Assembly: GCA_964035545.1 (NCBI GenBank)
Contig: OZ037770.1
Coordinates: forward strand, 15,366,642-15,430,641
From: Bugula neritina
Taxonomy: Eukaryota; Animalia; Bryozoa
Direction of reading: 5' to 3'
Length of the DNA: 64,000 nt
Below are positions 1,210 to 63,576 of this stretch, in pieces. A program made the position numbers and the translations under genes. Each line of letters starts with the position of its first letter. Within the stretch, counting starts at the first letter, position 1. The notes beneath the pieces are model-generated. The model did not search any database, was not told the DNA's origin, and saw nothing but the letters and a program-made list of their open reading frames with translations.

Positions 1210-1769
1210 ATGAAGTTTATAATCTTTTCTGTACTTCTTTTTGCTTTAATATGTTTACAAAGTGCTTCAGCATCATGTGAGTATAATATATTTTGTCAAA
1301 GTTTAAACATTATTATTTAACAATTTCTATTTCAATAAATTGCATTGTATTTATTTTCAGAAAACGGATTTTTTTTTTTAACGTATCTTTAGATTTTCAT
1401 GGTTTCATAATAAGTTTACAAAGCAATTTAAAACAAACACACCACTTGGCTTATCAAACTCTGTGAAAGTACAGGCTGAGAAAATCTTAAAAGATTTACT
1501 GCAGAAGATTTTAATTTCAGCTATGCATGTGTTATAACTTATACCTGCCGTCCAACTTCATGATATATAGAAGTATATTATCTGTTCCATTTAAAAAAGC
1601 GTTCTTTAAATTATTATAGCTGTGGCTCCAAACTATTTAATATCGTAATGTTTTAGGGCGGCGCATGGGCACTTCTCACTGCAAAGTTGACAGAGACTGT
1701 TTCCGAAAGGTATGCTGTGCCGGACAGTGTGTCAACGAAGGTGACTGTCCAGACAACTACATACCTTGA
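1210..1769 (+). CDS. Secreted 6-Cys peptide (C-C-CC-C-C); exons 1210-1276, 1657-1769
   Basis: MKFIIFSVLLFALICLQSASAS | phase-1 intron gtgagt..tttag | WRRMGTSHCKVDRDCFRKVCCAGQCVNEGDCPDNYIP*; TATA near 1107, AATAAA near 1864. Confidence 0.85.
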
Positions 1770-3124
1770 AAGAACTCCTTTCATGTGCTTTTATCATAGT
1801 TATAATTGATATATATACAATTTGTAGATTCAGTTTTATATATATTTGATATGTCTTGTCTATAATAAACATTTTTGAAAAGGTATATTATCAAAAACTG
1901 CATCTTCTTTATATAAAAGTTAGCTTATGCTGAATTATGGTGACACTCCAATATATTCTTGTAAATCAGCAAATATATGACTTCAAGCAGCATAAAAGAC
2001 ACACAGTTAAAAAAAGGGATATATATTTAATCTGATGTTAATAGAAAATTGTTGCGTAAAGTTCTTGGATGACTGCCTTTATATATATAGAAAGAGTATA
2101 ATTATATAGCAGTTACAATAAAATCAACATTCTAAGCTGTCATGTATGTTGTGCAATATAAGTTAACACAATTTAGCATTCACAAATATAGATTGTTTTT
2201 ACTTATTGCGAAAAATAACCTGGCTGTAATAAACAATATTATGAAAGCAGAAAATAACTGACATGTATGATAAATTGATTTTCAAAGTATGTTGTGTAAC
2301 TTCGCCTACATGACACATGTCAATTTGCATGTGTAATCGTGTTGCAATACATTTTGTAAAACTGAACTTCTGACATCAAAGTGAAATATGCATAATGTTG
2401 TATATCGCTTGTGGTTATATACGTATAGGCCATAGGTTTCAATTTATTATATAATCAGCTAAATTGTTGATACTTATTATATATGTAAATAATTTAGTAT
2501 AACAGCATAGCTGCGCTAAAATATTAGATAAATTTAACTTTATTAAATAAAATGAAATATGTCATTTTTCAATGTTATAGTAGTTTTTGCAAGCCACCAA
2601 TTTAAAGAGCTTGTGTATGTGTATATAGCTATATAATTGGAGATAATCTAAATAACATATTAGAGTCAAGATAATAAACTATACTGCTTCAGCTGTTGAC
2701 AAATTAGCACTATAAAGCTTGTGCATGTGCAGCTTATATGTATATAGCAATATCAGCAAGTCACAAAACATTTTTATATAATATCTAATTTCCACTTTCT
2801 TTTAAAAAACAAATGATGGCATAACTTCAAAAGAAAAACATTTTTCTAAAATGATTGAAGCTAATAATAATTTAGCCTTAACTTTCTTATTATAGGTTTT
2901 ACATAAACTGAATAGTAAATTTCACTAATGTCTAAAGACTTTTCAAAATTTTCTAATAAAATATTTTCAGTGCAAGTAAATAGCATATGTATGACTGGAT
3001 ATAAACATTGAAGTAAAAAGACAATAAAGGAGCTAAATTAGATTGTATTACATAATGTTTGCACGGTAGACTGCAAAACACAATGTAAGGTACATAATTG
3101 GATGACTAGAGTTTAGATGGTTTA

Positions 3125-3190
3125 ATAACCAGACATAAGGAAACAGGGTTGTTATATCTGGAGGAAATGACTAAATCATTTGGCAGATGT
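3125..3190 (+). promoter_or_regulatory. Conserved upstream motif ATAACCAGACATAAGGAAA..ATCT..GGAAAT..TTGGCAGA
   Basis: Recurs at 5794 and 8235. Confidence 0.55.
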
Positions 3191-3404
3191 TCATTTGAAC
3201 AAAAAATCAACCATTCCTCTGTGAAAACTCAAATATATCCAATTGGCTAAAACACTTATTTATCACAAAAAACTTACATCCTTATACAGAATACCCTAAC
3301 TACTAATTACCATAAACTCTACATATAAAAGTAAAAGCATATAATATATATGATTATATTTTTCATTTGTATTTTCACAACATTTTATTCTCAAAATAAA
3401 AACA

Positions 3405-3468
3405 ATGAAGTTTTTATTCATCACAATATTTCTATTTGTTTTAATCTGCTTGCAGAATATAGAAGCAG
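3405..3468 (+). CDS. Extra signal-peptide exon (alternative first exon or orphan)
   Basis: MKFLFITIFLFVLICLQNIEA+G then gtgagt donor; same 64-nt phase-1 format as paralogs; TATA near 3323; next in-frame mature exon is 4037-4188. Confidence 0.7.
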
Positions 3469-3660
3469 GTGAGTATATATAATAATGGTCAAACTTTACA
3501 AATTTCATGTTTTATACAAAAAAAATGTATGTATACACTAAAAAATTATTTTTTCATGTTTATTTTATAGAAAAATAAAATATTGAATTATTTAATTTTA
3601 ATTTTAATGGGGTTGACTGGAGATGTATTCATTGTTATGAAACGTTTCATCGAATGAAGA

Positions 3661-4188
3661 ATGAAGCTGGTAATCATGACTATGTTGGTAGTTGCTTGTG
3701 TGTTTCTACACAGTACTGATGCAGGTGAGTGTATCTAGTATATGTAGCAGTAGTAGTAGCAGTAGCAGCAGCAATAGCAGTAGCAGTATAGCAGTATAGC
3801 AGTAGCAGTAGCAGTAGCAGTAGCAGTATAGCAGTAGCAGTAGCAGTAGCAGTAGCAGTAGCAGTAGCAGTAGCAGTAGCAGTAGCAGTAGCAGTAGCAG
3901 TAGCAGTAGCAGTAGCAGTATAGCAGTATAGCAGTATAGCAGCAGCAGCTGATGAATGAAGCTGCATGCAGTGGTAGTATTATTAACTAGTGGGTATTTT
4001 AAATTGGTTATAATTGATACTAAGTGTCACTTCCAGGTCCACTTGCAGTTTGTGCTCTGCCTAAACCAGAAACCTGCAGTAACAAGTGTGTATCAGACTC
4101 AGAATGTCCCGGGATAGATAAATGCTGCTTTGTAGTCTGTGGAAACGTTTGTGTAGATCCCCGAAGCGCTGTTCCCTTATCATATTAG
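3661..4188 (+). CDS. Secreted single WAP-domain peptide; exons 3661-3724, 4037-4188
   Basis: MKLVIMTMLVVACVFLHSTDA | GPLAVCALPKPETCSNKCVSDSECPGIDKCCFVVCGNVCVDPRSAVPLSY*; 8 Cys in WAP spacing with the CxxDxECPGxxKCC motif. Confidence 0.9.
3744..3948. repeat. (GTAGCA)n microsatellite in intron
   Basis: Directly visible hexamer array. Confidence 0.95.
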
Positions 4189-6850: not shown

Positions 6851-7231
6851 ATGAAGTTAGTAGGTCTTGTATCACTTCTGCTGATTTTGACTTTTCTCCA
6901 CAACACTGTGACAGCACAGAGGGGTATGTGAGCTGACATCAATTTCTTTGTCTTATTAGAATTAATGGCGATGATAGTGACCTTTTTTCAAGGGATAAAA
7001 TTTAAAAATTAGTTTAAATAAATGGTAGTATATACATATATATATATATATATATGCTCGTGACTCCTAGGTGACCCCTAGAGTCACTTGAGCACTCTGG
7101 CTTGAGTTTACACACCTTTTAAATATGCTTTAGTAAAACTATAAGTTTTACTATTGCAAAGGTGTGGGCCATGGTACTCTGTTCTGTGCTGATGAGGGGA
7201 CAAATCCCGAAACAGCTGCTGTCCACAGATT

Positions 7232-7284
<53 letters not shown>

Positions 7285-7622
7285 GTATATGTATATATAC
7301 ATATATATGACTAATTACTCACAGTGCTATAAGACAATATCTATATATACTATAGTTTGTTTAAAATTGATATAGCTTATATATATAATTATTTGATATG
7401 CATGTATAAAACATCTTCGTTATTTAAACTATAACCAACTTATTGATAATTTATATTTTAAATGACCCTCTTTCAGACTGTACAAATCAAGATGGCCACC
7501 CCGGAATGGATGGACCTGACGGCCAAACCTGTGGAGGGGTAATTTGTGGTCACAATGAGATGTGCTGCCAGAGAGGAGGTAGAGATGGTGTTTGTGTCAG
7601 TCAAAGAGACCGTCAAGGATAA
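6851..7622 (+). CDS. Secreted 6-Cys peptide with short Gly-X-Y segment; exons 6851-6923, 7477-7622
   Basis: MKLVGLVSLLLILTFLHNTVTAQR | DCTNQDGHPGMDGPDGQTCGGVICGHNEMCCQRGGRDGVCVSQRDRQG*. Confidence 0.88.
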
Positions 7623-9627: not shown

Positions 9628-9940
9628 ATGAAGCTGATACTATTGACTTTGCTTGTCCTTGCTTGTTCGTGTTTCTACAGTGCTGATGCGCGTGAGTTTA
9701 CTAACATAATATGCAATATATTAGTGTAATACAGGCAGCAGTAATACAGTAATAGCAGCTGCAGCTTTATAAGTTTTTATTTTAAATATATTTATTATAG
9801 GTTGTGAGGCATACTCAGATCTAAAGGGGCCTCCGGGACTTAACTGGAGGCCATGCAATATAAACATCTGCTCGCCAAAAATATGCTGCATTAACGGCAA
9901 TAGTAGAATAATTTGTGTTCGCCCTGGAGATCTCTACTAA
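9628..9940 (+). CDS. Secreted 6-Cys peptide with GPPG motif; exons 9628-9691, 9801-9940
   Basis: MKLILLTLLVLACSCFYSADA | RCEAYSDLKGPPGLNWRPCNINICSPKICCINGNSRIICVRPGDLY*. Confidence 0.87.
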
Positions 9941-10880: not shown

Positions 10881-11825
10881 ATGAAGTTAGTAGGTCCTGT
10901 ATCACTTCTGCTGATTCTGATTTGTCTCCACAACACTGTGACAGCACAGCCAGGTTTGTAATATGTTGACTTATATATTATGTTGCAGTGATAGGTTTCA
11001 TTTTCAATTTCTCAAACTTCCAATTGAGTATTTAAATTGTAGTATATTAGGTATATTATTTTATAGATATGAAATAGGGCTTAGCCATAACCATTAGCTA
11101 TAATAATATTATACTGACAGCTATATAATATGTAATATGACATGCATATTATAATATATATTATAATATGACATGCATATTATAATATATATTATAATAT
11201 GACATGCGTATTATAATATATATTATAATACAACATGTACTATAATATGTATCATTATAAATCATGTTGTATTAGAATATATATTATAATATGACATTTA
11301 TTATAATATATATCATAATATGACATATGTATTATAATATAATATATATTATAATACATATCATATTATAATATATATTATAATACATATCATATTATAA
11401 TATATATTATAATATAATACATATGTCATATTATGATATATATTATAATACATGTCATATTATAATATATATTATAATATGACATGTATTATAATATATA
11501 TCATAATATGACATATGTATTATAATATATTATTATTATACCATTAGGGAATACAATGATGCAACATTAATATAGTAGAGTTTAACCTTAATGCCATTGA
11601 CCAACTGTGTCAGTATCTTTAAATGTATGTTTCATTTTAGGCTGCCAATCAGATGCTACAGGTCACCCTGGACCAAAAGGACCAGAAGGGCAAATGTGTG
11701 GAAATACAGTCTGTGGTTCTGGGGAAAGATGCTGTCGCAGCGGATCAGGAAGTTATTGCTATGATACAACCAACAGAGAGGGCAGCGGCGGCTACAATCG
11801 AGTTTTCAATAGATATATCCACTAG
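10881..11825 (+). CDS. Secreted 6-Cys peptide with short Gly-X-Y segment; exons 10881-10953, 11641-11825
   Basis: MKLVGPVSLLLILICLHNTVTAQP | GCQSDATGHPGPKGPEGQMCGNTVCGSGERCCRSGSGSYCYDTTNREGSGGYNRVFNRYIH*; paralog of the 6851 gene. Confidence 0.88.
11413..11524. repeat. Perfect 112-bp AT-rich palindrome inside an intronic AT-rich repeat (about 11120-11540)
   Basis: Arms are exact reverse complements about the centre 11468/11469. Confidence 0.85.
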
Positions 11826-12495
11826 CATATTATAGGAACTTATTGTTTAACCTATGAGAACCAAAATAAATTGTGAAAAACCTATAAGTATGTATACATA
11901 CTGTTAAATCTGTTTGCTGGCAGATTTTATTAATGCGTTGTATAATATTTTAATAGAAATACTAAATAAAATATGCAATTCAAAAAGCAGTAGTTATCTA
12001 TAAACTTTGTGCAATCTCGCTGCAAATTTGTTGTAAGTTGTAACTCATATAGTACATAATATTCTTATTATAAGTGATGATAATATTGTTTATATGTTGT
12101 AAATAATTGCTGCTAATGATTGTTTTTGCAATACAAATTGGTTTAACTTAAGCAAAGTCTGAAACATAATATACAAACTGTTTCATGCATCAAATTATTA
12201 AATTTAGTTTGAATAAATCATCATAGGAATTTGTATGAAATGGTTCAGTCAAAATAACATTAAATATAAAAATTCCATATTTGCAGAGATATTTGACCAT
12301 TTAATCAACATATTATAATGTTAATTCACTAGCCACTGCATTGATTTTCTACTTCCATCAAATATGCATGTCTATATATATCCATATGCAGTTTAATTTA
12401 AAAACACGTAACTGCCAGACAATTGACACTAAATACTGTCAGTGCATTATATACAGTTTAAGCATAACATCGGTGAAGTATCAGATGCTTTAGAT

Positions 12496-12568
12496 ATAAA
12501 GTTAGTAGGTCTCGTATTACTTCTGCTGACTTGGATTTGTCTCCACAATGCTATGACAGCAAAGCCAG
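12496..12568 (+). pseudogene. Dead signal-peptide exon (MKLVG subfamily)
   Basis: IKLVGLVLLLLTWICLHNAMTAKP; ATG->ATA and donor GT->CT; upstream 12300-12495 resembles the promoter of the 10881 gene; no exon 2 found. Confidence 0.8.
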
Positions 12569-13834: not shown

Positions 13835-14485
13835 ATGAAGTCCCATATCTTGGCATTGTTTCTGTTTGCAGTGCTTTGTCTCTTGGCAACAGAAGCATGT
13901 AAGTATTTTTTTCTACTCTGTGTATATGCTATAAATTATTTGTAATCTATATTTAATTGTTTAGTATAAAAGAGATATGCTCACCACCTAAAAAATATCT
14001 ATGCTATATTATATTAGAGCTATAGAAGTTGATTGGATCTATTTTCATTTCAAATAATTATAGTTTAATATTTTGTCTTTATTTCTTATAAAATAGATAA
14101 TAATCACCGTTATGTAGAGTTAGTTAAAAGCCCACAGCTTAACCTAGCCATGGAAATAAAATATGTAAGCTAAGAATAATTTCCAACAATTTTATAATGC
14201 AGTTCATACTCTCAATCAAATAATATTTTGTTAGGCATTGGTCTACCAGGTTCGCCTCCATGTAGTGATGATACACGCGGTTTGCGTGGATGTCCAGAGA
14301 CGAGACTTGGCCAAAAAAGTTTAGATGGTATACCTGGGCCAACACACAAATTTAGATGTAGATGTTTCATTAGACCTGGAGCTCCTGGGTGTAGCACCCA
14401 TCATGAATGTGGAAGGCAGTATTGCTGCTATGACTATGCAGCCGGAGAGAACTTTTGTACACCTTCTGGAAGAGATCTTAATTGA
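13835..14485 (+). CDS. Secreted peptide with degenerate collagen segment plus WAP-derived domain (10 Cys); exons 13835-13898, 14235-14485
   Basis: MKSHILALFLFAVLCLLATEA | CIGLPGSPPCSDDTRGLRGCPETRLGQKSLDGIPGPTHKFRCRCFIRPGAPGCSTHHECGRQYCCYDYAAGENFCTPSGRDLN*. Confidence 0.87.
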
Positions 14486-16311: not shown

Positions 16312-16886
16312 ATGAAGCTTTCAATTTCCGCAATGCTTTTATTTGCAGTGTTTTGTCTTTTAGCAACAAAAGCATGTAAGTATCTTTAACATATTTTAAA
16401 ATAAAAAAGTATATTTCGTAATAATTGACACTACTTTGTTAGTGTACAAAGCTTTATTTTTTAACTCGGAAGAAATTGCTATGTTATGAACAATCTCTAG
16501 AACTTTATTAAATTTATTTTTATTTCAACCAGTTTAAAATTTGCTTGTTTGTTAGCAATTTTCTGCTTTTGTTGCTATTATATTGCAGAGGTCTATATTA
16601 ATATATTATAACAAAATGAAAAAAGTTAAAACAAAATCAATATAAAAAAATGATTATCAATCACTAAAATATAAAGTCAAGTAATGCTTTACCTGGTTCA
16701 CCTGGATGTGTTGTAGCGGCCGGATGCCCAGGTCTACCTGGTTTACCCTCAGATCCCCCAGGCCCACCTGGTGCAGCTGGATGTGGTTGCAACATTAGAT
16801 TTGATAAGGATGGATGTAGAAGTCACAGTGAGTGTGGACCAGGACAACTCTGCTGCTATGAAGGGAGATTTAACGTCTGCCAGTAA
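16312..16886 (+). CDS. Collagen-like plus WAP-derived secreted peptide; exon 1 16312-16375, exon 2 start uncertain (16681 or cryptic 16717)
   Basis: MKLSISAMLLFAVFCLLATKA | (C)NALPGSPGCVVAAGCPGLPGLPSDPPGPPGAAGCGCNIRFDKDGCRSHSECGPGQLCCYEGRFNVCQ*; the homologous acceptor reads AA, not AG. Confidence 0.65.
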
Positions 16887-44297: not shown

Positions 44298-44514
44298 TCT
44301 GAAAAAAGTTTATTATAGATGATGAATGCCTATTTCTGCAAACTTGATAAATGGCAGGTCGTGGAAACTAAAACTACAAACATTAAATGCTATAGCAGCT
44401 TACTATATAATGCTAAGACCTGTAAAACTAAATCAACGTATTTTAATTAAGTCTTATTCAAGTTCATTTCGAATTGGTGAAAAATGCCAAAAATAGGCTG
44501 CATCATAATATGTA

Positions 44515-45843: not shown

Positions 45844-45930
45844 TATAGTCGAACAGTGCACGCTTACGCGTGTACCGGTGCGTTGCTATATACCAGCTTT
45901 TATTCAAAATAATGAGCTTTGTGGCCTAAG

Positions 45931-46252
45931 ATTGGCAAACCTTATAGTTCTAAAGCCTTGAAACATATTTTGGTGAATTTTTAAGGACAGCTATAATTCT
46001 GCAGATTCAGGTGTATATCTTGATTCAAATTAGTCTGTCTTAGAAATTTTTTCATTGCAACATTAGCAAGTGGCAGATAAAAGCTATAAGACCTTATAGC
46101 TTTTATCTGCCACTTGCTAATGTTGCAATGAGAGAAATTCTAAAACAGACTAATTTGAATCAAGATATACACCTGAATCTGCAGAATTATAGCTGTCCTT
46201 AAAAATTCATTAAAATATGTTTCAAGGCTTTATACAACTATAAGGTTAGCCA
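45931..46252. repeat. Fold-back inverted duplication of about 320 bp (arms about 160 bp, 2-nt spacer at 46091-46092)
   Basis: Arms are near-identical reverse complements; the right arm resembles 59873-60040 in direct orientation. Confidence 0.9.
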
Positions 46253-49220
46253 GTTTTCATACTTTCTCCCTGTTTTTAAAAAACTAAACAGAAAACTAAA
46301 CGTCGTTAGTATAAACAACTTTATTTTTTAATGCACCTTATCACTATATAATTGTCAAGTATAAAAGTACCAGCTTATATTATTTTAGATTTTTTTTTAT
46401 ACATTAATAGCAGCAATTTGTAGATAACATTACGTAATTATGTTGGTTATAGAAATGCATTTATAGTTATATTATTATAGAAGCGATAGTATATATGGTG
46501 TTTTATCAACCTTAATTTTTTATTTGCTTACAATCACTGCTACTTTGAATAAATTTAATTGTAATATAATGTAAATATTATCATTGTGAGTAATCCTGCT
46601 GCGAAACATTAGTTGGATTTTTTTGTTATGCTTCTAATGAAAAACTAGATTTACATTTTCAGTCTGATATATACAGTCACAAGCATCTAGTAATTACTGT
46701 TATAGTAGTAGTATAGTCACTAATCACTTAAGGCTAAAAGAAAAAAAGTAACTATATACTTTAGTTAGTGACATTAAAGTTGATGATCGTATAAACAACA
46801 ACTCATTTATTGGTTTACAAAATTAATATTTTATTTTGACTTTGAAAAATGTTGTAATTGCATATTTTTAATTACAAATAAATTATTGAATTTACCAATT
46901 TTAATCTATAACAGTACCTAATCATAACAATATTAGGGTTTTTATTAATTGATTTCATTTATTTCAACAGCATGTATCAGGTTAGAAGTATTATGAAAGG
47001 AATTCTCTATGATGCATCAACATTTATGTTATAACTGTTATTTGATACTAATTTTAAAAAATAATATAGAAATATTTCATGCATGCTTTAGTAAATTTTT
47101 GTTTCACTATGATTATATTATTTAAGTAGAATATTTGAGTTTTAGAAATGACAAAATTTTTTATGAAGCATAACGGCTTTTGACACTTTATAATATTTAA
47201 AAAACAATAAAATAGAGTCGAAACGGCTATATCTAATATTTTATTTTAGCACCCAGCATCACCAAGTGTTAATTATATTAAACTACCAGCTTATTTACAA
47301 CCTGTTTTATATATAACTAAATGACAGTAATATAAATAACATTGTATTATATTATTTTGCTGGTTGAAGGGTGCAGTAATTAAAGACACGTGCTGGTACG
47401 CAAATTGAAAAATTTATTCTGTCTGATATATTAATAATTGAATCAGTCGTGACATTAGAGGATATGGGTGAGCAATGGGTGCAAAAAATAGCAATACTGT
47501 TGATAATTATTTTTGGGATGTTGTGCTCAATATTTATATAAAATACTATCATTATATAAACTTTAGAGGTTAAACAAATTAAGTTTACTTACTTTTCCTT
47601 AGCCAAAACTAAGTTGCTCTTACCACACATTGCATCTATTAGAAATCGTCACCATGTATGTATGTATGCATGTATAGAGTTGCATGGCTGACTTACAAAT
47701 TCAATCAATATCTACAAAATAAAATATTAAAAACAGTATTTTTAAAAAAAAAACATTGAATCATGAAAACGGCTGTATGTGTATTTGCAATAATTTACAT
47801 CAAAATCACAAGTGATTCAATTTACTTATCATTCGTCAGTACAGTAAGTATTTGTAATATTTTGAAACCATTTCATAAATTCTCTACTCACAGCTGAATA
47901 ATATTATTAAAAGTCAAACTAATATATATGTTATAACTCTTTACAACCTGCAACATTTCTATAGATGGAAGTTGCTAAAATTTGTGAAAAAAGTTTTTTA
48001 AAAACCAGACAAAAAAAGTTGTACCAATTAGAACCAATTCACAAAAAGTACAATATTATAGCCATTTTTAAACTTCTTAAATAATCAGCTTTATATAAAG
48101 AAATGCTGACAATATTGTGATTATCATATTATTAAGATGGCACATGTTAGGCATCACAACTATATTCTCTTTTCACAAATAAACATGTCTCAATATATAA
48201 AAACTAACACACTGTACCTCAACGCCACATAGATCAGGCTTGGCACTCTCGATCTCTTTGGTTTTTGAAAAAGCCAAAAATATAATTGAATTAGCCATGA
48301 AGTTTTTTATTTTTAGTAGAGTGCATCACAAAGTGTCAAGTTTAAAATTACTGTTTTTTTCGCACTTCATTTCATAAATAGGTGGCAATCGTATGAATAG
48401 CAATATAGAAGTTTGCTAATGGACATATTCAGTGGTTATTTAAATGTACTGATATAAAATTATAACTTTTGTTCGGCTTTGTATTATTGGATTATAGTTT
48501 AAACAGCTATAAAGTACATTTTGACTTTAGACAATTACACAGTTCTGTAAATAACAATAATTAATAATTATCACTATATTCTATAAGCATGGCTTCTTTC
48601 ATGACCATGATGTAACTTTCAATAAACTTTCTATACATTTTGCAACAGCTTAGATATGTATAACACAGAAGAATCTTTCTAATAGCTTAAATACTTTCAA
48701 TAAAGACAGGTTACAGCTAGTTTACACATACGTATATGGTAAAAGTTCATATCTTTTAAAAAAATCAAACATTTGTACAAACATGAAATTATAGTGCTTC
48801 AAAATATTCAGAAGTTTTGATGATAGCATATAATGTTATTTAAATTAGAGTAAAAGCTCATTTCTGCTAACTTGATGGCAGGTCATGGAAACTAAAACTA
48901 GAAACATGAATCATTATTATAGCAGCATATTACATAGCAAATAGTGCTGCGTAAAGTCAATTTAACATTTTTCAATTAATTCTTTAGTTCTATTTTAAAT
49001 TAGTAAAAACCTACCAAAGAATAGGCTACAAGGTTACACAGCAGACACTTGCCACGTGTACTGGTGTGTTGCTACCAGCTTTCAATTAAAATACTGTTTC
49101 CTTTTATAGAAATGTCCTCACCACGGGTATAGTATATAAAGGGGAGAGTTGATTACACAAAATCATAACAGTTATATCATACAGATTATCAGTATCTGAT
49201 TTTATACAAAGAGAAACAAT

Positions 49221-49708
49221 ATGAAGCTCGCAATCTTTACTCTGTTTGTTTTAGCATTAGCTTATCTTCATCCATCTGAAGCTGGTGAGTATATACCATG
49301 TTTACTGACTGTTAATTAGGTGTAATGTTTGTTTTTCATTTCAAAATATTTCAACTTTGTCTCTCAAGAACAACACACGCATTTTTTTCATCCCATATCG
49401 TGTGATATTAAAATTTACGAACTCTGCTAGACAAGTATGAAACATTATCAAAGCACAAATATAGACTGGATAACAAAAAGTGTTTTTCACATATATAATT
49501 GTGCACATTAATATAATTATCATATTATATTATTATATATAATTATCTGCTGTTGATTTCAGGATCATTTGGAACTTGCCCACCACCAGATTCTCTTCCT
49601 AGAATCTGTCAGTCAGATTGTGCCAGTCACCTTCATTGCCGTCCAGGAAATCTATGCTGCTTCAATGGTTGTGCGCATATTTGCGTAGATCCCACTGGCA
49701 TTTATTAG
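49221..49708 (+). CDS. Secreted single WAP-domain peptide; exons 49221-49284, 49563-49708
   Basis: MKLAIFTLFVLALAYLHPSEA | GSFGTCPPPDSLPRICQSDCASHLHCRPGNLCCFNGCAHICVDPTGIY*. Confidence 0.92.
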
Positions 49709-52895: not shown

Positions 52896-53600
52896 ATGAA
52901 GCTCACAATCTTCACTCTGCTTGTCTTTGCATTTGCTTGTCTTTACACATCTGAAGTTTGTGAGTATATATACAATGTTACGTGTTAAGTTATTTTTTAA
53001 GATGAAGCTTTACTACAAAATAGTTTAAGTATCTATAGCAATGACGGTCAACATAGGATTTGTATAACATGTCTATTCATGCATGGCAATTTTAAAACTC
53101 ACTCAATCTTTTTTGTATATTTTTATATGCAAAACAGAAAAAAACAACTTTGTCATAGAAACAAATATGTCTATTTTTCTACCAAACACTTTATCTAGTA
53201 TATTTGCAAAACAAAACTTGATTGAGTAGATTAGGTAAGCTGCAAGCTTTCTATGATTTACAAGCAACAAACCTTGGTAGAACTTTATAGCAACATGTTT
53301 GTGAAAAAATATTTCCACATCTCCAGGGAGTTTTGCTGAAAAGATGATTATTTGTTGAATATTTAATTTTATTTCACATACAAGAACAAACCAGTTTTGT
53401 CAAATGAGGCATTTGTTAGCCGTGTCACTATAGTTTCTCAAAAATGACATCTGCTTTTGATTTTAGATTCTGGTGGAAACAGCAAAATCGGAATATCTTT
53501 TCCCGGATATTGTGGAGATAGATGTAGAGATAGCTCTGACTGTATTGATGGACGTCCCTGCCGTAATACAGACACCTGCTGGAGAAAGACATGCGTATAG
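52896..53600 (+). CDS. Secreted 6-Cys WAP variant lacking C1 and C6; exons 52896-52959, 53467-53600
   Basis: MKLTIFTLLVFAFACLYTSEV | YSGGNSKIGISFPGYCGDRCRDSSDCIDGRPCRNTDTCWRKTCV*. Confidence 0.85.
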
Positions 53601-54567: not shown

Positions 54568-55300
54568 ATGAAGCTCACAATCTTCACTCTGCTTGTCTTT
54601 GCATTTGCTTGTCTTTACACATCTGAAGTTTGTGAGTATATATACAATGTTACGTGTTAAGTTATTTTTTAAGATGAAGCTTTACTACAAAATAGTTTAA
54701 GTATCTATAGCAATCACAGTCAACATAAGGTTTGTATATAATATGTCTGTTCATGCATGGCAATTTTAAAACTCACTCAATCTGTGTTGTATATTTTAAT
54801 ATGAAAAACAGAAAAAATGAACTTTGTCATAGAAAAGCTGGCATCGGTTACCTATGTTTTTATCAAAAACGATATATATATAGTACGAGTATATTTGCAA
54901 AACAAAACTTTATTGAGTAGATTAGGTAAGCTGCAAGCTTTCTATATAGTTTAAAAGCAACAAACCTTATCAGAACTTTATAGCAACATGTTTTTAAAAA
55001 AAAATTATACATCTCCAAAAAGTTTTGCTCAACAGATAACTATTCATTGAATATTTACTTTTATTTCACATACAAAAAAAATCAGTTTTGTCAAATAATA
55101 TATTTGTTAGCCGTGTATTTATAGTTTCTCAAAAATGACATCTGCTGTTGATTTTAGATTCTGTATATAAAAGGGGCTTCGGAACACATTTTTTCGAATT
55201 GTGTAGCCATGAATGTAAAGGTAAACAGGACTGTAGTCTAGAACAGTTCTGCACCTATACAAGCATGCTGAAGGCAAAAGACATGCCTCCCAGACCATAA
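54568..55300 (+). CDS. Duplicate of the 52896 gene with a frameshifted C-terminus (4 Cys; possible pseudogene); exons 54568-54631, 55158-55300
   Basis: Identical signal exon | YSVYKRGFGTHFFELCSHECKGKQDCSLEQFCTYTSMLKAKDMPPRP*; the ancestral ..C..KTC lies in another frame that also has a TGA. Confidence 0.65.
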
Positions 55301-56598: not shown

Positions 56599-57335
56599 AT
56601 GAAGTTCGCAATCATTGCTCTGTTTGTTTTAGCATTTGCTTGCTTTTATGCATCTGGAACAGGTAAGTTTATACATACAATCAATGCATGTTAATTCATT
56701 TTAAGATAAAATGCATAGTTTTGAAATAGTAATTTAAATGTGGAAATCAAGGTCAACATATATATAGAGCTTTTATGTATTTATATAACAACTTCAAAAT
56801 TTGCTCAATGTTTTTTGTATGAAAATGTGCAATACAAGAAAAGATCAATTTTGGCATAGAAAATCTGCAATAATTTGTCAAAACAAATCTGCTTCTTATT
56901 ATCTACCAATATCTATATATAATAGTTGCACGATAATATATTTTATTGAGTATAAATTCTGCAAGCTGTACGCTTTCTATAATTTAAAAGCACTTACTAG
57001 ATATAGCTTTAATCCATTTTGAAAAAAACACACAGATTACAAAAGAATTTTGCCCAACAGATGATTATTATTTGAGTATTTAATTTCATTTAGCATGCAA
57101 AAACTAAAACGAGGTATATTTGTTAGCTATGCTTATTTTATTTTTCAAAAACTAAAATATTCTGTTTAATATAGTTTTTCCTTATTATGTGTACGGGACC
57201 TGCCCAGGACCAGATGCCTTTGGATTCTGTCGGCTGAACTGTACAGATCACTCTGACTGTGGTGTGGCAATGCTATGCTGCTACAACAGGTGCGGGCGCA
57301 AGACATGCGTCCCATCACTTCCCTTCGATTTATAA
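56599..57335 (+). CDS. Secreted single WAP-domain peptide; exons 56599-56662, 57175-57335
   Basis: MKFAIIALFVLAFACFYASGT | VFPYYVYGTCPGPDAFGFCRLNCTDHSDCGVAMLCCYNRCGRKTCVPSLPFDL*. Confidence 0.9.
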
Positions 57336-58769
57336 AAGATGAAGACACATTGCTATATCAATTGTATAATTGGAATATTTCTCCTATTATGGTTTTAAAC
57401 ATCATTATGGTACTAATTTAACAAATTAAAAGAGTTAAATGAATGGAATTGAGTCTGACCTTTGTCATTTGAAGCATATATATTATAAAAATTGCCAAAT
57501 GTATATTTAAAATAAGTTGCATTAAAGTGGTATTAAACTTTTGATTTGTCTTCTTTTTTTTCCTTTGTTTTAGACCATCTCTGAGCTAAATTTAGCTTTT
57601 CACAAATATCTTTTCATGACATCTTACATCCTGAGCTTTTATTACAGCTGCTGAATAATTCTAAAATTGTTGTAATAAACCAACAGCAAGATAAACCAAG
57701 TGCTTATTTTTAATTTTTATAAAATATTTACAAAGAATGTTACTCCTTATTTGAGAATATAGTATATTTGTATCGGTTTGTGTTTGTGTCTGGTTGCAAG
57801 ATATGCTTTAACTGCTAGCCAACTTGGCAACGGGTTTTCGAGTTTATTAACTGTCAAATCGTACCCTATAAAATGGGAAACATTAGAAATTGTATAAATA
57901 AGTAGTCACAATATAAATCAAAATTCAGAGGAACACTATGAATATTACAGAACCAAAAAATTGACATGAACTATTATAATTCTAATAAACTTACAATATT
58001 GATGCGTGGATAAAAATCTTAGCCATCACAATGCTGAAACCGATAGTTTATTCATACAAAGAGTGTAAATATGGCGGTTTGATCATGATACACTGACTCA
58101 TGCAGTACAGTGAATGAACTAGCTCTGCCAGCTAATAGTAGCTTTGGTGAAAGCTTTTGAAGCTTGAAAGCTTTAATGATTGGCTGCCTGCCAATACATC
58201 TGGGTGGCATACCAATACAATATTACTTTACAAAATACATACTTGCGCTTTGCAAAATAATAATATAATATTGCAAAACTTTGATTATAATATGTGAAGC
58301 AACATCACGTATTTCACTGCATGGTACTGCAACACAATACCAGTGAAGCAGTAAGAATGGGCATTGAGGTCAAAGGGCAATCTGTATTCCTTAGAAATTA
58401 CTAGCTGCTATACGCTCAATAATGCAGCTTTAATAACATGTTGCAAACTATAAACAATTTATACCATATTTTATAAAAATATTTATTTATTTATTATTGC
58501 AATATCACTTTATTAAAAATAAGTAGAATTTCTTAAATAATGAATAATCAATATTAGTTCCAAGGCCAACTGTATATATTGTTTTTGAAGGAAGATAAGT
58601 TTATAAATCATGGCATGATGCAATATGGTTGCCAAATCATGATAAGAGTAGTGCTACATGCTCTGATAATATTGATTATAGCAAAACTGAGTATATGCAT
58701 AAATGCATATATATTCACACAAGCTATATATAGAGTGGAAATCTTGTAAACAAATATCATTAGCAGAGT

Positions 58770-59347: not shown

Positions 59348-59440
59348 GCCTTTGGGCATGTGGGTGAACATGTGATATAGTAACTCAGACCACAGGATAA
59401 ACTGGAAATGCTGTTATAATAGATGCAGTTACACTCGTTC
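59348..59440 (+). pseudogene. Relic WAP exon
   Basis: GCCTTTGGG..TGT..ACATGT.. then, in another frame, KCCYNRCSYT, resembling AFGFC..CCYNRCG of the 56599 gene; contains stops and frameshifts. Confidence 0.5.
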
Positions 59441-60502
59441 CTCTATACGGAACCTAATATTTAGTATAGCTGAAGTTGCAGAGCTCTTGAAGATTATTTA
59501 TTTCATACAGTGACTTTTGATTAAATTAGTTTTTCAGACTGGTATTTTAATATAATTATATTAGCTATAACGAGTTATTTTCATTTTTCTTAGAATACTT
59601 CACAAAGTGTCAAGTATATGTAGAAGAACCAGCTTGTTTCACATTATGCTTTATAAATAAGTGACAAGAGTATAAATAACATTATATCTAAATGTTACCG
59701 CAATTGACACGTATGTGTATTCATATATATATTCAAATAGTCATACAATAAACTGTGAGCTACTGATTCAGTATTATAGTCCTCTGTGATATACCTTTGA
59801 ACCACTTTGCACAGACTCACTTTTTTGCTGAATATAACATGATAATACAATACAAGTTAATATGTAAAGGTATAGGATTTTATCTGCCGTTTACTAAAAG
59901 GTTACAATGAGATATTATCTAAAACAGACTAATTTGAATCAATAAGTAATTCTAAATTAACATAAATATAGTTGCCCTTAAACATTTACCAAATAATTTT
60001 TTCAAGGCTTTAAACCTTATAGGTTCGGCATTTTTTCATACTTGACCTAGTTTTCAAACATCTAAATAAAAACCTAAACTTTGGCACTATATATATAGTT
60101 ATATAGCAACTTTATTTTTGAATGCAAAATATGGCATCACTGAGTGTCAAGATATAAAAGTATACCAGCTTAATTTAGATCGTTTTTATAAATAAATGAT
60201 ATTATGCAATTTTGGTTATATAATGTTATATACATGCATGCAGTAATTAAAAGTGCTGGTATACATTAATTACAAATAATATTCTGTTTAGTATTTTCAA
60301 ACTAGTTTCTACAGCCATTCACCTTCCTTTTGAAATTACATAATGCAGTGAGTATTTAGTATTTAAGTTTATTTATAGAAACATTGCTTTGTTTAGGATA
60401 GTTTGCTCTCAGAAATTCAAATTTTTAAGTTTGAATTTAAATTATATTTAAAAGAAAATTTTTCGAACATTCAACATTAAAAAAGTTTGAAAATCTAAGC
60501 TC

Positions 60503-60693: not shown

Positions 60694-60980
60694 AAAGCAT
60701 TTCAATGCCGCATATCAGTTTACTTTGCCGTGTATTCATTGAAGGAAATAAGGAAAAGGCTGCTAAATCATATTGTACTAACACAACATACACTCGCTGC
60801 ATTTCCTGGTACACTGTTATAACGAGATGTTTATTAATATGTCATTTCCTTTTATAGTAGTATATAGCTAGTATACCATGCAGCAAATATATATATATAT
60901 AAAGAAAGGGTTCGCCTATACACTAGCATTACTAGTACACAAGTGGTTTGAATATCAGCTGTTATACAGAAAGAATTAAA

Positions 60981-61744
60981 ATGAAGTTCACAATCTTCAC
61001 TCTGTTTGTCTTTGCGTTTGCTTGTCTTTACACATCTGAGGCTGGTAAGTTTATGTATAATGTCAACCATAAATTTTAATTTATTCTAAGATAAAATGTA
61101 ATACTTGAATATAATATAGCTCAAGTGTGATATTCACAGTCACAGCATTTCATTAGCAAGCTTTAAACTCATATAATTTGTTCTGCATATATAGACATCC
61201 ACAACAGTGAAATACATTGTGTAATAGAATTAAGGTTTTTATGTACATTATCCTTTTTCACCACAAAATTGTGCCTATTTATCCTGAACCTGTCTATATA
61301 AAATCTTACAAAAGAAATTGTACAAAATATAAAGGCCGTCGTCATATTCTATTTTAAGAGAATGATATTAGTCAAGCAAATATTTTTTAAAATGACCAAC
61401 TTTTAAAAATTTTATATGCAGCAGTGGAATAATTATTTTTAAATATATTTTGATTTTATTTTATATAATGTAAATACAAACAGCCATGCATGCATGGGAT
61501 CACATATAACCAAATTTTGTCAAGTGACACATTTATTAGCTCTTTTAAGCCACAATATGAAAAGGAAAAGTTATAACAGCTGCTGGTAATTTCAGGTGTG
61601 GTTGGAGTTTGCCCTCCATCTAGTGACTTTGGAATCTGTCTGCAAGAATGTACAAGTCACCTTCAGTGTAGTGGAGGACAGCTATGTTGCTACAACGGTT
61701 GCGGGCGAACATGCACTCCTCCCGACGCCATATATAAGAGATAA
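60981..61744 (+). CDS. Secreted single WAP-domain peptide; exons 60981-61044, 61596-61744
   Basis: MKFTIFTLFVFAFACLYTSEA | GVVGVCPPSSDFGICLQECTSHLQCSGGQLCCYNGCGRTCTPPDAIYKR*. Confidence 0.92.
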
Positions 61745-62211
61745 AGGCACCCGGCTATTAATTGTGTTTAAAAATTGTATGCTCATTAAATTAATTTTTT
61801 GAAGCAATAGCAATATTTTGCAAAGTTCGAAAGCTATAAATAAATTCAATTCAATATATTATACTCTGCATGGTGCTTACAGAAACAATTAAAGCATAGA
61901 AAACTGCTTTATGTAGCCAGGATAATTTAAATCAAATTGATAACTAATTCAATTTAATTCTCTCTCATCAAGACAATAGTTGTCTGTAATATGTTGAAAC
62001 CACTAATTGACAAATATTCACAATGCTGCTGCATGATGGGTAGAAATCAAACTAGCACATGCTATGGCTCTTCATAGTCTGAGTGTTGACATTTGCTAAG
62101 GCTACACTGACAAGAACTCAAACAGGCATATGAATTATTCAGGAAATCCTAATTTACAGAAAGTCCAAATAATATAACTACCTTTGAAACTCTATAACCT
62201 ACATACTCCAG

Positions 62212-62350
62212 GTACAGCCACACCTTGTCCATCAGTCCTTGCAGACTCTGCAAGAATTGTGGGAGAAAATGTCACAAAGATTCTGATTGCAAACGAGACA
62301 AGAGTAGTTGCTCCACCGAGTTTGGAGTTCTCTGTAGAGTTAGTTTCTTG
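62212..62350 (+). pseudogene. Orphan frameshifted WAP exon
   Basis: ccag|GTATPCPSVLADSAR then shifted NCGRKCHKDSDCKRDKSSCSTEFGVLCRV; no signal exon of its own. Confidence 0.7.
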
Positions 62351-62926
62351 GGAAATAAATCAATTTTTATTATTAAGTTTCACAGCTATTAAATAAAATA
62401 TATGTCTGTTGTACAAGACTTCATGATTTCACAATATAAATGATTGAAATCATTACATATAACATTCTTATACAATTTTATTTAGTTTTTTTACCTAAAG
62501 TTTGGCATCTAACTGCCTGTATCTAAATATATCCTGCCATCATGTTACATATATCAGCTCTCCCAGAGCACCATACTAATTATTATACTTATAAAAGTAC
62601 ATCCAACCTGTTGACAAGAAAAGTGCATCACCATTTGGGTGTGGATTAAAAAATATGGGCTCATACCATCTTTGTACAATCATTAGGTATGTTGTAACAA
62701 GGTTGTCATAGTTACTGATTGCATATCTAGTATAATGGTGGTTGTGGAATGTCTGGCATATTCATGTATGCCCACATATAGAAAAATCTCTTTATAAAGT
62801 TCTACGGAAGGGATTATATATATCTAAGCATATTAAGTAGTGAACTTTAGGTAGTGAAAGTTGTGTTGAACATACAGAAGCACTGCTAGTTAAACTCGAT
62901 CTCTTTATACAACAGCAACTGCAACA

Positions 62927-63576
62927 ATGAAATTCTTCGCTTTTACTTTGTTTCTACTTGCTTTCCTTTGGGTTCAAGGCACCGAGTCCTGTAAGTATAT
63001 GTAACGCAGCTCATAGGACTTCAGGCTAAATATAAAATCTAAGTCACAAAACTAAACACTCAATTGGTAAATAACCTGTTCATCATTAGTTTAACTTTAA
63101 TTTGTTTTGGCTAGTAGTTTGAGTAAATCTGTACTTTATTGCAGCTATAGTATAGCATGCTTACTATTAGTAATTGAGAAAAAACTTAAGACGTGTTTTG
63201 AAATGTTTTCATAATATAAAGTGCTCAACAATCTACTTAAATATTTTGACAGTCATTCATCGCCATTGAAATTAAAACTTTGTCTAAAAGCAGCACCATG
63301 CAGATAGAAAACTAAAAGTTGCTGGGTTTTCATTTTTGTTGAATTAACCTAACTGTAACCTATAACACACAGAATGATACTCATGTCATGTGCTTCTGTA
63401 TGTGTCTATGAAATATAAATTGAATTTTAGAAGTATTAAAGGGTTGTCCCCCTCCTACTCAGCACGGGATTTGTGCAGAAACGTGTGACGATGACCTGGA
63501 TTGCCCAGGAAATTAAATTTGCTGCAGAAGTGGCTGCTGGAGCAGTTGCGAGCGCCCCCAACTATCGCAAGGATAG
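62927..63576 (+). pseudogene. WAP gene with a premature stop; exons 62927-62990, 63434-63576
   Basis: MKFFAFTLFLLAFLWVQGTES | LLKGCPPPTQHGICAETCDDDLDCPGN*ICCRSGCWSSCERPQLSQG*; TAA at 63514-63516, all 8 Cys retained. Confidence 0.85.

Follow-up and report, generated by a model that had tools for sequence, protein, structure and literature searches.

The mammalian WFDC locus (SLPI, elafin/PI3 and others, on human chromosome 20) is a cluster of small WAP genes in which signal peptide and WAP domain occupy separate exons, and some of its members reportedly evolve rapidly. Waprins (nawaprin, 1UDK; omwaprin, 3NGG) are secreted single WAP four-disulfide-core peptides of about 50 residues that occur as snake-venom components. 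Crustins, the secreted WAP antimicrobial peptides of crustaceans, are encoded by a large multigene family particular to their lineage; their WAP domain lies at the C-terminus and in type II crustins is preceded by a Gly-rich region and extra cysteines (PMC9680087, PMC7401287, PMC5793079). In conotoxin superfamilies the signal is conserved and accelerated nucleotide substitution is limited to the mature-peptide region (PMC10561478).

Here we describe an array of about 29 units in a Bugula-like bryozoan, found in a 64,000-nucleotide stretch of DNA (the window). Its small WAP genes are clustered and divided between signal and WAP exons as at the WFDC locus; that locus, however, has far fewer single-domain genes and lacks collagen-like or Cys-free derivatives, and SLPI and elafin possess a long Cys2-Cys3 protease-binding loop that is missing from the array units. 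With the waprins the array shares the ~50-aa secreted single WAP core and an identical cysteine spacing, including the short Cys2-x3-Cys3 loop (profile E 4.5e-8 and 6e-6), but it is a multi-unit array with derived non-WAP frameworks, known from sequence. The layout of type II crustins is broadly analogous to that of class B, one of the peptide classes of the array, although crustins belong to another phylum and descend independently, class B carries a regular Gly-X-Y repeat inside the domain (after Cys1) and has lost Cys7 and gained CxC, and the array peptides are mostly not cationic. A conotoxin-like mode of divergence is seen in the group of unit 52896 and, more weakly, elsewhere, where exon 1 stays conserved between paralogs that cannot otherwise be aligned; conotoxin precursors contain a propeptide and typically three exons, whereas the array units have two exons, no propeptide, a WAP-derived fold and mostly conserved canonical members. 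Class B also resembles cnidarian minicollagens and C1q-type stalks in its short Gly-X-Y run adjoining a Cys-rich module, a possible trimer lock, but it has only ~10 triplets, and a WAP-derived head replaces the minicollagen CRD or gC1q domain. A sequence search of the PDB yields a single match for class B, to a C1q collagen stalk, which at E 0.37 is not significant, and the Pfam Collagen score of the class is 22 bits against a threshold of 27.2.

A motif scan combined with an nhmmer profile of the window recovers 26 copies of the signal exon on the + strand, beginning at the exon 1 starts listed in Table 1; the sole copy on the - strand is one inverted fragment (31445-31381), so that the placement of all units on the + strand in the first-pass annotation is very nearly correct. 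Exon 1 is usually 64 nt long (range 58-73 nt) and invariably phase 1; it has donors of the GTAAGT/GTGAGT type and an ungapped identity among paralogs of 65%, compared with 29 ± 6% in random 64-mers. Second exons comprise 23 that can be assigned and two orphan relics (35909-35995 and ~59406-59459); 20 units have a phase-1 acceptor followed by a Cys-rich open reading frame, and three have short Cys-free second exons. The mature exons encode peptides of 25-82 aa. Unit-like elements, arranged as head-to-tail two-exon mini-genes with related copies grouped in blocks along the array, total ~29, the number originally proposed. We score ~14-16 as intact and 5-7 as questionable, with 6-8 dead or relic, which is close to the 17, 3 and 8 given before. 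Since a search of the 20 kb upstream of 1210 yielded no units, the array starts at 1210, as first placed; its end lies beyond the 63576 initially assigned, because the array overruns the window by ~6.3 kb and three more units (L003 2497, ~3995 and 6234). The whole array lies on one chromosome of the window's assembly (G000 C6:15.367-15.437 Mb).

Table 1. Units, relics and fragments of the array (window coordinates).
Element	Exon 1	Exon 2	Strand	Product	Status and remarks
Unit 1210	1210-1276 (67 nt, GTGAGT)	1657-1769	+	36 aa, 6 Cys, C-5-C-4-CC-3-C-5-C; only sub-threshold Pfam matches (conotoxin_I2/haemadin)	intact
Orphan signal exon	3405-3468 (ATG and GTGAGT donor intact)		+		193 nt 5' of next signal exon; relic or alternative first exon of unit 3661, because its own second exon is absent
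Unit 3661	3661-3724	~4037-4188 (acceptor candidates 4025, 4037, 4049)	+	canonical WAP, 8 Cys, Pfam WAP 41.5 bits	intact
Unit 6851	6851-6923 (73 nt, GTATGT)	7477-7622	+	class C, 6 Cys, Gly-X-Y stretch of 4 triplets	intact
Unit 9628	9628-9691 (intron 109 nt)	9801-9940	+	class C, 6 Cys	intact
Unit 10881	10881-10953 (73 nt; weak donor GTTTGT)	11641-11825	+	class C, 6 Cys	probably intact
Signal exon	12492-12565	not found	+		dead; ATA at start codon, CT at donor
Unit 13835	13835-13898	14235-14485	+	class B head with CxC, odd Cys number (9)	questionable; collagen repeat decayed
Unit 16312	16312-16375	16717-16886	+	class B, 8 Cys	intact
Unit 18655	18655-18718	18999-19231	+	class B, (Gly-X-Y)10, CxC, WAP-derived head; net charge +10; Pfam Collagen 22 bits, sub-threshold	intact
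Unit 20301	20301-20364	20623-20825	+	class B, (Gly-X-Y)10	intact
Unit 22473 (22473-23121)	22473-22536 (intact)	from ~22948	+		pseudogene in the window's lineage
Unit 23637-24489	~23637-23700 (ATC for start codon)	relic 24311-24489	+	5 Cys	dead
Unit 25803	25803-25869 (67 nt)	~26157-26398 (weak acceptor)	+	class B head, 8 Cys	questionable; collagen repeat gone
Unit 28167	28167-28230	28434-28660	+	class F, essentially Cys-free; GRDG remnant kept	questionable
Unit 30212	30212-30275	30661-30740	+	class F, 25 aa, Cys-free	questionable
Partial class-F signal exon	31381-31445		-		inverted; continues into the tandem repeat (GCAAATAGCT)n (10-nt period, 31279-31418)
Signal exon	32826-32911 (copy start 32835)	not found	+		dead; 1-nt insertion, CT at donor
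Unit 34390	34390-34453	34986-35071	+	class F, 27-aa basic Cys-free peptide	questionable
Orphan exon 2	absent	35909-35998	+	class-C-like, C-4-C-5-CC-8-C	dead; in-frame stop immediately 5'
Unit 36364	36364-36421 (58 nt)	37009-37124	+	canonical WAP, 8 Cys, Pfam WAP 22.1 bits	intact
Unit 40378	40378-40441 (GTACGT)	41101-41237	+	canonical WAP, Pfam WAP 39.7 bits; net charge +5	intact
Unit 49221	49221-49284	49563-49708	+	canonical WAP, Pfam WAP 35.3 bits	intact
Unit 52896	52896-52959	53467-53600	+	6 Cys, CC motif gone	young duplicate of pair 52896/54568
Unit 54568	54568-54631	55158-55300	+	4 Cys	questionable; 1-nt indel close to 3' end puts last Cys codon off frame
Unit 56599	56599-56662	57175-57335	+	canonical WAP, Pfam WAP 28.9 bits	intact
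WAP exon-2 relic		59406-59459	+	remnant CC-x3-C	old relic
Unit 60981	60981-61044 (intron 61045-61595)	61596-61744	+	canonical WAP, Pfam WAP 44.6 bits	intact
Unit 62927	62927-62990	63431-63576	+		single in-frame stop, 63514-63516

In the predicted plan every unit is driven by a TATA-type promoter of its own; exon 1 corresponds exactly to the signal peptide, and exon 2, beyond an intron of 0.1-0.7 kb in phase 1, encodes the entire mature peptide. TATA-like motifs accompany 17 of 23 units, compared with 31% of random positions (p = 3e-5). A contig of run X1, which is RNA-like and only presumed to be RNA, joins 61044|61596 across an intron with GT..AG ends, and this joint is absent from the DNA-like run. 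Because at 18 of 18 variants the spliced contig carries the allele of the B. neritina draft, it documents the ortholog and not the window's copy, so that the one predicted junction found spliced is spliced on a sister-lineage allele only. At unit 56599 an X1 contig covers exon 2 and the 3' UTR. Two annotated B. neritina proteins (70 and 69 aa) consist of a 64-nt exon and a WAP exon. The two-exon model, which agrees with the signal exon of 58-73 nt, phase-1 intron and single mature exon first put forward, is thus supported by one spliced ortholog junction and two B. neritina proteins of identical structure.

Seven units exceed the gathering threshold of Pfam WAP (PF00095), and the classes that do not match Pfam have the signal exon, the phase-1 intron and a C-5-C-x-CC core in common with them. 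The canonical class comprises 8-Cys WAP peptides of waprin-type spacing; class B carries (Gly-X-Y)n between Cys1 and the head, with a gained CxC motif and Cys7 replaced in place, its CC-7-C equaling CC-3-C-3-C; the remaining classes are 6-Cys forms and the short Cys-free peptides of class F. Aligned with hhalign, class B matches the canonical class at a probability of 91% (E 1.2e-6), whereas class C matches WAP at 11%, weak at the peptide level, and is tied to WAP because exon 1 and intron phase are shared. Among the matches of the profile are anosmin-1, nawaprin, omwaprin, SLPI and elafin, as well as a P-superfamily conotoxin; the Cys2-x3-Cys3 segment aligns without gaps to the waprins, while SLPI requires a 5-residue insertion. 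Structure prediction gives models of low quality (pLDDT 42 in class B, 65 in the canonical class), and WAP structures take the top Foldseek ranks, but at E of at least 0.88. Classes B and C are restricted to the array locus, and no interleaved signal exons were found in other WAP clusters. The proposed WAP ancestor is borne out by the Pfam matches, the class B alignment and the signal exon and phase-1 intron present in all classes, and these sequence features support descent of all units from one single-WAP-domain gene via repeated tandem duplication.

Modeled as a trimer, class B scores 0.48, compared with 0.02 for the best control, with an interface formed by residues 1-32, contact agreement between runs of at least 77% and a partner pLDDT of at least 64. 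Of 30 proteins solved as pairs of one chain, 21 attain that mark, compared with 0 of 23 known as single chains, a calibration made on two copies, not three, and the trimer pass may echo the model's memory of solved collagens. On this prediction class-B peptides would form disulfide-linked trimers via their collagen-like stalk.

The array is collinear with the draft of B. neritina, the sister lineage, at a noncoding identity of 80-88%. The first-pass annotation had considered that orthologs of the whole set might already be described; at least seven units do have one-to-one orthologs there, but only two of these are annotated, both as hypothetical proteins, and a literature search found no paper describing them. 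Within the collinear 20 kb the B. neritina annotation calls two of six complete units, in keeping with the expectation that gene predictors miss most of them. Against one-to-one orthologs the canonical WAP units have dN/dS values of 0.14 (unit 56599), 0.22 (unit 60981, ortholog EB796_003257), 0.33 (unit 62927) and 0.42, which indicate purifying selection. As unit 62927 is otherwise conserved and its B. neritina ortholog is open, its stop codon marks either recent pseudogenization or a polymorphism. Unit 16312 of class B, in which exon-2 identity to the ortholog (L009/P0002) equals intron identity and dN/dS is 0.62, evolves almost as fast as neutral sequence. Compared with its counterpart in the sister lineage (P0004/L011), which is intact, unit 22473 has an 8-nt gap near 23053 that shifts its frame; it is therefore a pseudogene in the window's lineage. 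Turnover by birth and death, as originally proposed, is supported by comparison of the two lineages: the pseudogenes 22473 and 62927 and the duplication 52896/54568 are lineage-specific, and the relic at 59406 is present in both (collinear B. neritina place L008 8466-8546).

In the 52896 group the mature exon outpaces the introns beside it in divergence by a factor of 2.5-3.6 (Fisher p from 6e-9 to 2e-15). Units 52896 and 54568 are 92% identical upstream, 100% in exon 1, 88% in the intron, 58% in exon 2 and 88% downstream, and exon-restricted excess divergence, as far as the alignments show, is limited to this group. 'Rapidly diversifying', the description first applied to the whole locus, consequently holds for the 52896 group and fails as a general statement; judged from divergence, the regime is mixed across units: conserved, near-neutral and fast. 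Exon 2 of the pair has a pairwise dN/dS of 2.0, but its dS of 0.47, compared with ~0.12 in the intron, is raised too, so that positive selection alone is insufficient. A non-adaptive origin, through relaxed constraint with local mutation or through an old duplication with converted flanks, is somewhat unlikely. It would account for the high exon-2 dS, for the missing cysteines and frame-changing indel of 54568, and, by 5' module conversion, for an identical exon 1 (dS 0); a dS lower in exon 1 than in exon 2 recurs in further pairs (6851/10881: exon 1 dS 0.14, exon 2 ~2.0). The exon-2 excess recurs between species, however, at 2.5-2.8 times against the ortholog, where conversion is unable to homogenize flanks, and under relaxed constraint the neutral (intron) rate is a ceiling. 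No donor copy for this exon 2 was found in the array or genome, Cys codons are preferentially retained inside the diverged stretch, and the dN/dS itself argues against a non-adaptive origin. The likeness of signal exons among paralogs even at synonymous sites would reflect constraint or 5' module conversion.

A defense role of the peptides is plausible; they would act more in the manner of antibacterial waprins and crustins than as protease inhibitors of the elafin/SLPI type. Mollusc shell matrices contain WAP-domain proteins, and the products could instead serve in structures or matrices (cuticle/ectocyst, larval adhesive, biomineral matrix), with class B as a very small extracellular collagen that bears a Cys-knot head, and with WAP units similar to the WAP proteins of shell matrix. 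The (Gly-X-Y)10 runs, to which the predicted trimer interface is confined, would fit such a role, as would a net charge near zero in most mature peptides, unlike typical cationic antimicrobial peptides; the two papers found to name bryozoans and WAP together are biomineralization studies. We nevertheless consider a matrix role unlikely, given that the peptides are tiny, encoded one gene per unit and subject to fast turnover while matrix proteins are mostly bigger and repetitive, and that the canonical units are built on the waprin framework.

It is more doubtful still that only a few canonical WAP genes function, with classes B, C and F and the 6-Cys forms as decaying duplicate debris. No fewer than 6-8 elements are plainly dead, class F has been stripped of Cys and unit 16312 is near-neutral, yet in class B the reading frames stay open, the splice signals are intact and an even 8-Cys pattern is conserved in five paralogs and two lineages (P0002-P0004), the three class-F paralogs have a common conserved acceptor and open frames, and TATA-like motifs are kept. 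Venom-like toxins or injected effectors against other organisms are very improbable: bryozoans are not known to possess a venom apparatus, and the terms 'effector' and 'toxin' used at first find no support, since the top matches are WAP proteins, conotoxin matches fall under curated thresholds and canonical units are conserved, not hypervariable. What speaks for toxins is the conserved-signal, variable-mature pattern known from conotoxins (PMC10561478), together with the weak Pfam conotoxin_I2 matches and the P-superfamily conotoxin at E 0.002.

We therefore return to defense as the preferred reading. The locus is probably a single tandem array of independent mini-genes derived from one WAP-domain gene, and its products would be secreted defense peptides that work on the surface of the colony or in its body fluids. 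Its evolution is modular, the mature exon ranging from strongly constrained to faster than the introns.

The window (G000:C6:15366642-15430641, in a 216-Mb, 321-contig assembly) is eukaryotic DNA with a composition of 29% G+C and without long ORFs. A scan for ATGAA followed by an open hydrophobic frame and a GT donor 49-84 nt further on returns matches almost only on the + strand, and a nucleotide profile built from the signal exons recovers 26 + strand copies (E < 1e-6) and one - strand fragment. Exon length is 64 nt in almost every copy (range 58-73), and the phase is 1. Exon-1 paralogues share 65% identity in ungapped comparison versus 29 +/- 6% for random 64-mers of the same window; identities were measured ungapped and by MAFFT, and a permissive global aligner that gives about 75% on random AT-rich DNA was set aside. 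In twenty units a phase-1 acceptor lies downstream and opens into an ORF of 4-9 Cys; three Cys-free units (class F) have a conserved acceptor in common, followed by short ORFs that retain a GRDG remnant. The exon-2 acceptors of units 3661 and 25803 are ambiguous. A six-frame profile search also detects two orphan exon-2 relics, and reveals that the exon-2 frame of unit 62927 resumes beyond a single stop. In total, about 29 unit-like elements are present, close to the count proposed in the first-pass annotation.

The array begins at position 1210, with 20 kb of unit-free DNA upstream, and ends beyond the window, where three further units are followed by none. Of these three, one is a canonical WAP unit and two are 6-Cys derivatives with the CC pair cut to a single Cys; the first two have clear B. 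neritina orthologues. The classes occupy physical blocks along the chromosome, as local tandem duplication predicts. An 8-kb stretch within the array is free of units and contains a 42-nt tandem repeat and several - strand ORFs of 60-100 aa; Pfam yields no match for five ORFs of this gap, nor for two ORFs elsewhere in the window. The 10-nt repeat next to the inverted signal-exon fragment apparently grew from that fragment, its unit being the reverse complement of the signal exon's AGCTATTTGC motif.

Coordinates of the array units, relics and neighbouring features (window positions unless a locus is named; units by exon-1 start)
Feature	Position	Remark
Second exons passing Pfam WAP	3661, 36364, 40378, 49221, 56599, 60981, 62927	62927 in truncated form
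Class B (collagen-like)	13835, 16312, 18655, 20301, 25803	dead relative 22473
Class C (6 Cys)	6851, 9628, 10881	2-4 Gly-X-Y triplets
Cys-free units	28167, 30212, 34390	GRDG remnant
Other reduced frameworks	1210, 52896, 54568	also last two units beyond the window
Units beyond the window	L003:2497-6707	in the 10 kb after the window
Dead signal exon	12492	ATA at start, CT at donor
Dead signal exon	23637	start reads ATC
Dead signal exon	32835	1-nt insertion and CT donor
strand fragment	31445-31381 (- strand)	inverted piece of class-F signal exon, running into 10-nt tandem repeat
Orphan exon-2 relic	35909-35995
Orphan exon-2 relic	about 59406-59459
Unit-free stretch	41300-49200
42-nt tandem repeat	44025-44339	in unit-free stretch
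ORFs of the unit-free stretch	43974-44282, 44771-45004, 45035-45268, 45403-45669, 47352-47552	no Pfam match
Other ORFs	962-1213, 31258-31575	no Pfam match
10-nt tandem repeat	31279-31418	(GCAAATAGCT)n
(TAGCAG/CAG)n repeat	3737-3940	occupies much of unit 3661 intron; gives spurious 95-aa - strand ORF (3680-3967)
AT-rich 29/31-nt palindromic repeat array	11133-11562	in unit 10881 intron
Long (AC)n microsatellites	21027-21390; 32913-33500	one directly 3' of dead signal exon 32835
High-copy repeat or mobile element	57590-58390	between units 56599 and 60981
Dispersed paralogue	L012:2249-2961	G000:C3:10084249-10084961
Other WAP cluster	C9:1927542-1933572	L005
Other WAP cluster	C2:32764733-32775587	L006
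Other WAP cluster	C3:29486979-29496035	L007

Exon 1 encodes M-K-x, a hydrophobic core of at least 12 residues and small residues at -3/-1 (e.g. S-E-A, T-E-A). With spliced models searched exon by exon, each unit is predicted to be able to yield a putative signal peptide of about 21 aa followed, across a split codon, by a single small peptide, disulfide-rich or linear. In 17/23 units TATA-like motifs stand 40-110 nt before the ATG, versus 31% of random positions (p = 3e-5), an excess that makes the units look like separate transcription units. Poly(A) signals occur 36-167 nt after every stop and are given no weight, because the DNA is 29% GC and a contig from sequencing run X1 runs on for over 330 nt beyond the unit 60981 stop. 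This 644-nt contig (depth 148; X1 counts as RNA only by software guess) covers 60963-61043 and resumes at 61595 after a 551-nt skip bounded by GT..AG, and its joint is the predicted junction 61044/61596 of unit 60981. The joint is absent from X2, a DNA-like run in which all bins are covered. All 18 of the 18 listed variants of the spliced contig carry the B. neritina draft base, and the contig thus documents splicing of the orthologue and not of the window's copy. A second X1 contig, at 57198-57464, spans exon 2 and the 3' UTR of unit 56599; only 6/12 of its variants agree with the B. neritina draft, and it may come from a third allele or a paralogue. Between units 56599 and 60981, X2 contig depth climbs from about 100 to a maximum of 20,800 over a high-copy repeat or mobile element; X2 also contains a form without 57768-58249, and the element may be polymorphic.

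The closest public protein relative, and the sole close one, is the 70-aa 'hypothetical protein EB796_003257 [Bugula neritina]'. Its contig (GCA_010799875.2) and the 3' third of the array are collinear, with a noncoding identity of only 80-88%, indicating that the window derives from a related Bugula-group lineage distinct from that draft. Two annotated genes of this contig (70 and 69 aa) consist of a 64-nt exon and a WAP exon in a phase-1 join. The B. neritina annotation captures only two of the six complete units in the collinear 20 kb; this supports the expectation that predictors miss most units, and such families are therefore under-counted systematically in invertebrate genomes.

Seven second exons pass the gathering threshold of Pfam WAP PF00095 (20.8 bits), scoring 21.1-44.6 bits; classes B, C and F and units 1210, 52896 and 54568 fall short of it (at most 13.6 bits, or nothing). 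Six canonical units contain the full eight Cys of the pattern C1..C2..C3-x5-C4-x5-C5C6-x3-5-C7-x3-4-C8, with the spacing C-x4-9-C-3-C-5-C-5-CC-3-C-3/4-C. Searched against solved structures, the canonical profile matches anosmin-1, nawaprin, omwaprin, SLPI and elafin. The AF2 model of a canonical unit has a pLDDT of 65, and Foldseek places nawaprin, anosmin-1, SLPI and elafin on top, without significance (E >=0.88, TM about 0.4). SLPI and elafin possess an extended Cys2-Cys3 loop with the P1-P1' reactive site, whereas the canonical units have only Cys2-x3-Cys3; aligning SLPI to them needs a 5-residue insertion at Cys2-Cys3, which is the SLPI protease-binding loop. In contrast, waprins and anosmin align with this short segment free of gaps, which places the canonical units with the waprins and apart from the elafin/SLPI type.

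Class B departs from this framework. Its pattern, C-(15-25)-C-1-C-8/9-C-5-C-5-CC-7-C, retains C3-5-C4-5-CC and C8 at exact spacing and is missing C7; the 7-residue gap equals 3+1+3, so Cys7 has been replaced in place. A CxC motif is present upstream. Alignment by hhalign to the canonical units covers the Cys3-Cys8 half (91%, E 1.2e-6). Units 18655 and 20301 carry an uninterrupted (Gly-X-Y)10 after Cys1, the longest run in the array, which scores 22.0 and 19.9 bits against Pfam Collagen PF01391, below the gathering threshold of 27.2. A homologous-protein search with the collagen-like exon gives no match, an exhaustive profile search finds only three relatives, all in sister-lineage DNA, and a sequence search of solved structures finds no relative of class B. 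Class C connects only weakly by hhalign to canonical units or class B, so its membership rests on the common signal exon and intron phase. The 6-Cys forms have lost more of the WAP Cys pattern than class B has. Genome-wide, classes B and C are confined to the array, bar one dispersed two-exon paralogue on C3. In this paralogue the signal exon is 67 nt long and phase 1 (E 1.3e-5 with the exon-1 profile), and the second exon encodes a KRR site, what is left of a short Gly-X-Y stretch, and a head of the form C-9-C-5-C-5-CC-7-C. In the other genomic WAP clusters, WAP exons follow each other uninterrupted by signal exons; these clusters probably encode large multi-WAP proteins with a gene structure unrelated to the array.

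The AF2 model of class B is unusable (pLDDT 42). In a three-copy model, the chains meet in a staggered interface made of residues 1-32 of each, which are exactly the Gly-X-Y stalk, with a score of 0.48 versus 0.02 for the best of three controls, at least 77% of contacts agreeing between runs and a partner pLDDT of at least 64. The mark used is reached by 21/30 proteins solved as one-chain pairs and by 0/23 solved as single chains, a calibration on two copies, not three, and the pass is possibly memory of solved collagens. The model supports the view that the stalk would work like collagen, as distinct from membership in the collagen family. The CxC, directly after the stalk, could form interchain disulfides.

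What these peptides do can be approached through their likenesses. The products would be secreted, and the canonical ones may act like waprins or crustins, as antibacterial, membrane- or surface-directed peptides and not as elafin-type inhibitors. Crustins are crustacean cationic antimicrobial peptides whose WAP domain is C-terminal and may be accompanied by Gly-rich and Cys-rich regions (PMC9680087). The present units differ in their bryozoan host and in their mostly near-neutral charge (net about -2 to +2 in most units; exceptions 18655 at +10 and 40378 at +5), and their architecture is analogous only. The main rival assigns the peptides a structural or matrix role. No result speaks for a toxin, as considered in the first-pass annotation, or for an injected effector. 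Our literature searches found nothing relevant on bryozoan or Bugula WAP peptides and no description of bryozoan host-defence or secreted-peptide gene families.

Comparison with the sister lineage separates several evolutionary regimes. Exon-2 dN/dS against the orthologue, estimated like the other values from 43-66 codons, is 0.14 for unit 56599, 0.22 for 60981, 0.33 for 62927 (stop aside) and 0.42 for the first unit beyond the window, and introns of the canonical pairs are 85-88% identical. Judged from these alignments, the canonical-end pairs are under purifying selection. Class-B unit 16312 and its orthologue (L009/P0002) are 84.4% identical in exon 2 and 84.3% in the intron (dN/dS 0.62). 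A candidate orthologue of unit 20301 (L010:102-332, P0003) is uncertain, with saturated dS and unalignable flanks, and was left out of the rates. The description of the locus as rapidly diversifying thus needs correcting: it does not suit the canonical units or 16312, where exon equals intron, and only the group of units 52896 and 54568 shows an exon-2 excess. Among older paralogues, exon 1 forms a similarity island (78-91%) within otherwise unalignable DNA, and its dS is much below the exon-2 dS of the same genes; conotoxins show this combination of a conserved signal with a variable mature region (PMC10561478). Birth and death, also proposed from the first reading, is documented four ways: in unit 22473 an 8-nt gap shifts the frame of an 8-Cys class-B exon that is intact in the sister lineage; unit 62927 is interrupted by one stop that its open orthologue lacks; the 52896/54568 pair is a single unit in B. 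neritina; and the relic at about 59.4 kb is common to both lineages.

Units 52896 and 54568 have the same exon 1 (100% identity); they are 92% identical upstream, 88% in both the intron and the downstream flank, and 58% in exon 2. Divergence starts a few bases past the acceptor and stops at the stop codon, and mainly Cys codons are conserved. Against the single B. neritina orthologue, intron identity is 83-84% and exon-2 identity 50-59%. In this group exon 2 has diverged 2.5-3.6 times as far as the flanks (Fisher p 6e-9 to 2e-15), versus a ratio of 1.0 in the 16312 control.

Several explanations of this pattern can be weighed. Gene conversion from an extant donor predicts a second copy of exon 2, and for neither unit does exon 2 match a second site in the array or elsewhere in the 216-Mb genome; replacement by an extant donor is thus excluded. 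Conversion of the flanks could homogenize the surrounding DNA, but it cannot produce the between-species exon-2 excess. Pairwise exon-2 dN/dS is 2.0, yet dS is 0.47, above the intron level, and selection alone is therefore not a full account of the divergence. A more ambitious joint reading, which we regard as unlikely, takes class B to be a new miniature collagen, with a (Gly-X-Y)10 stalk inside a WAP domain and a disulfide core rewired (Cys7 lost, CxC gained) as a trimer lock, combined with an exon-targeted acceleration in some units that would be conotoxin-like, synonymous as well as non-synonymous, and bounded by splice acceptor and stop. If true, this joint reading would mean that a lophotrochozoan immune-type gene family has a mechanism of diversification focused on exons. 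The 52896/54568 pair is an unusually clean case of single-exon divergence and lends itself well to weighing selection against mutational causes.

WAP peptides as such are already known, as are WAP gene clusters (WFDC, crustins) and the mode of evolution with a conserved signal and a variable mature part. What appears to be new is the scale and purity of the array, with its roughly 29 single-domain mini-genes; the succession of remodelled frameworks inside one locus, among them a collagen-stalked WAP derivative without a solved or annotated relative; and the sharply exon-bounded hyper-divergence of one young pair. The array is a compact natural experiment in disulfide-rich domain remodelling: within 70 kb it passes from canonical WAP, through loss of one Cys and gain of two together with a collagen stalk, to 6-Cys and Cys-free forms, a series with dated orthologues in the sister lineage. 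Bugula is a model for defensive bacterial symbiosis and a major fouling organism, and a large, fast-turnover family of secreted peptides is therefore an obvious candidate for controlling its surface and symbiotic microbes.
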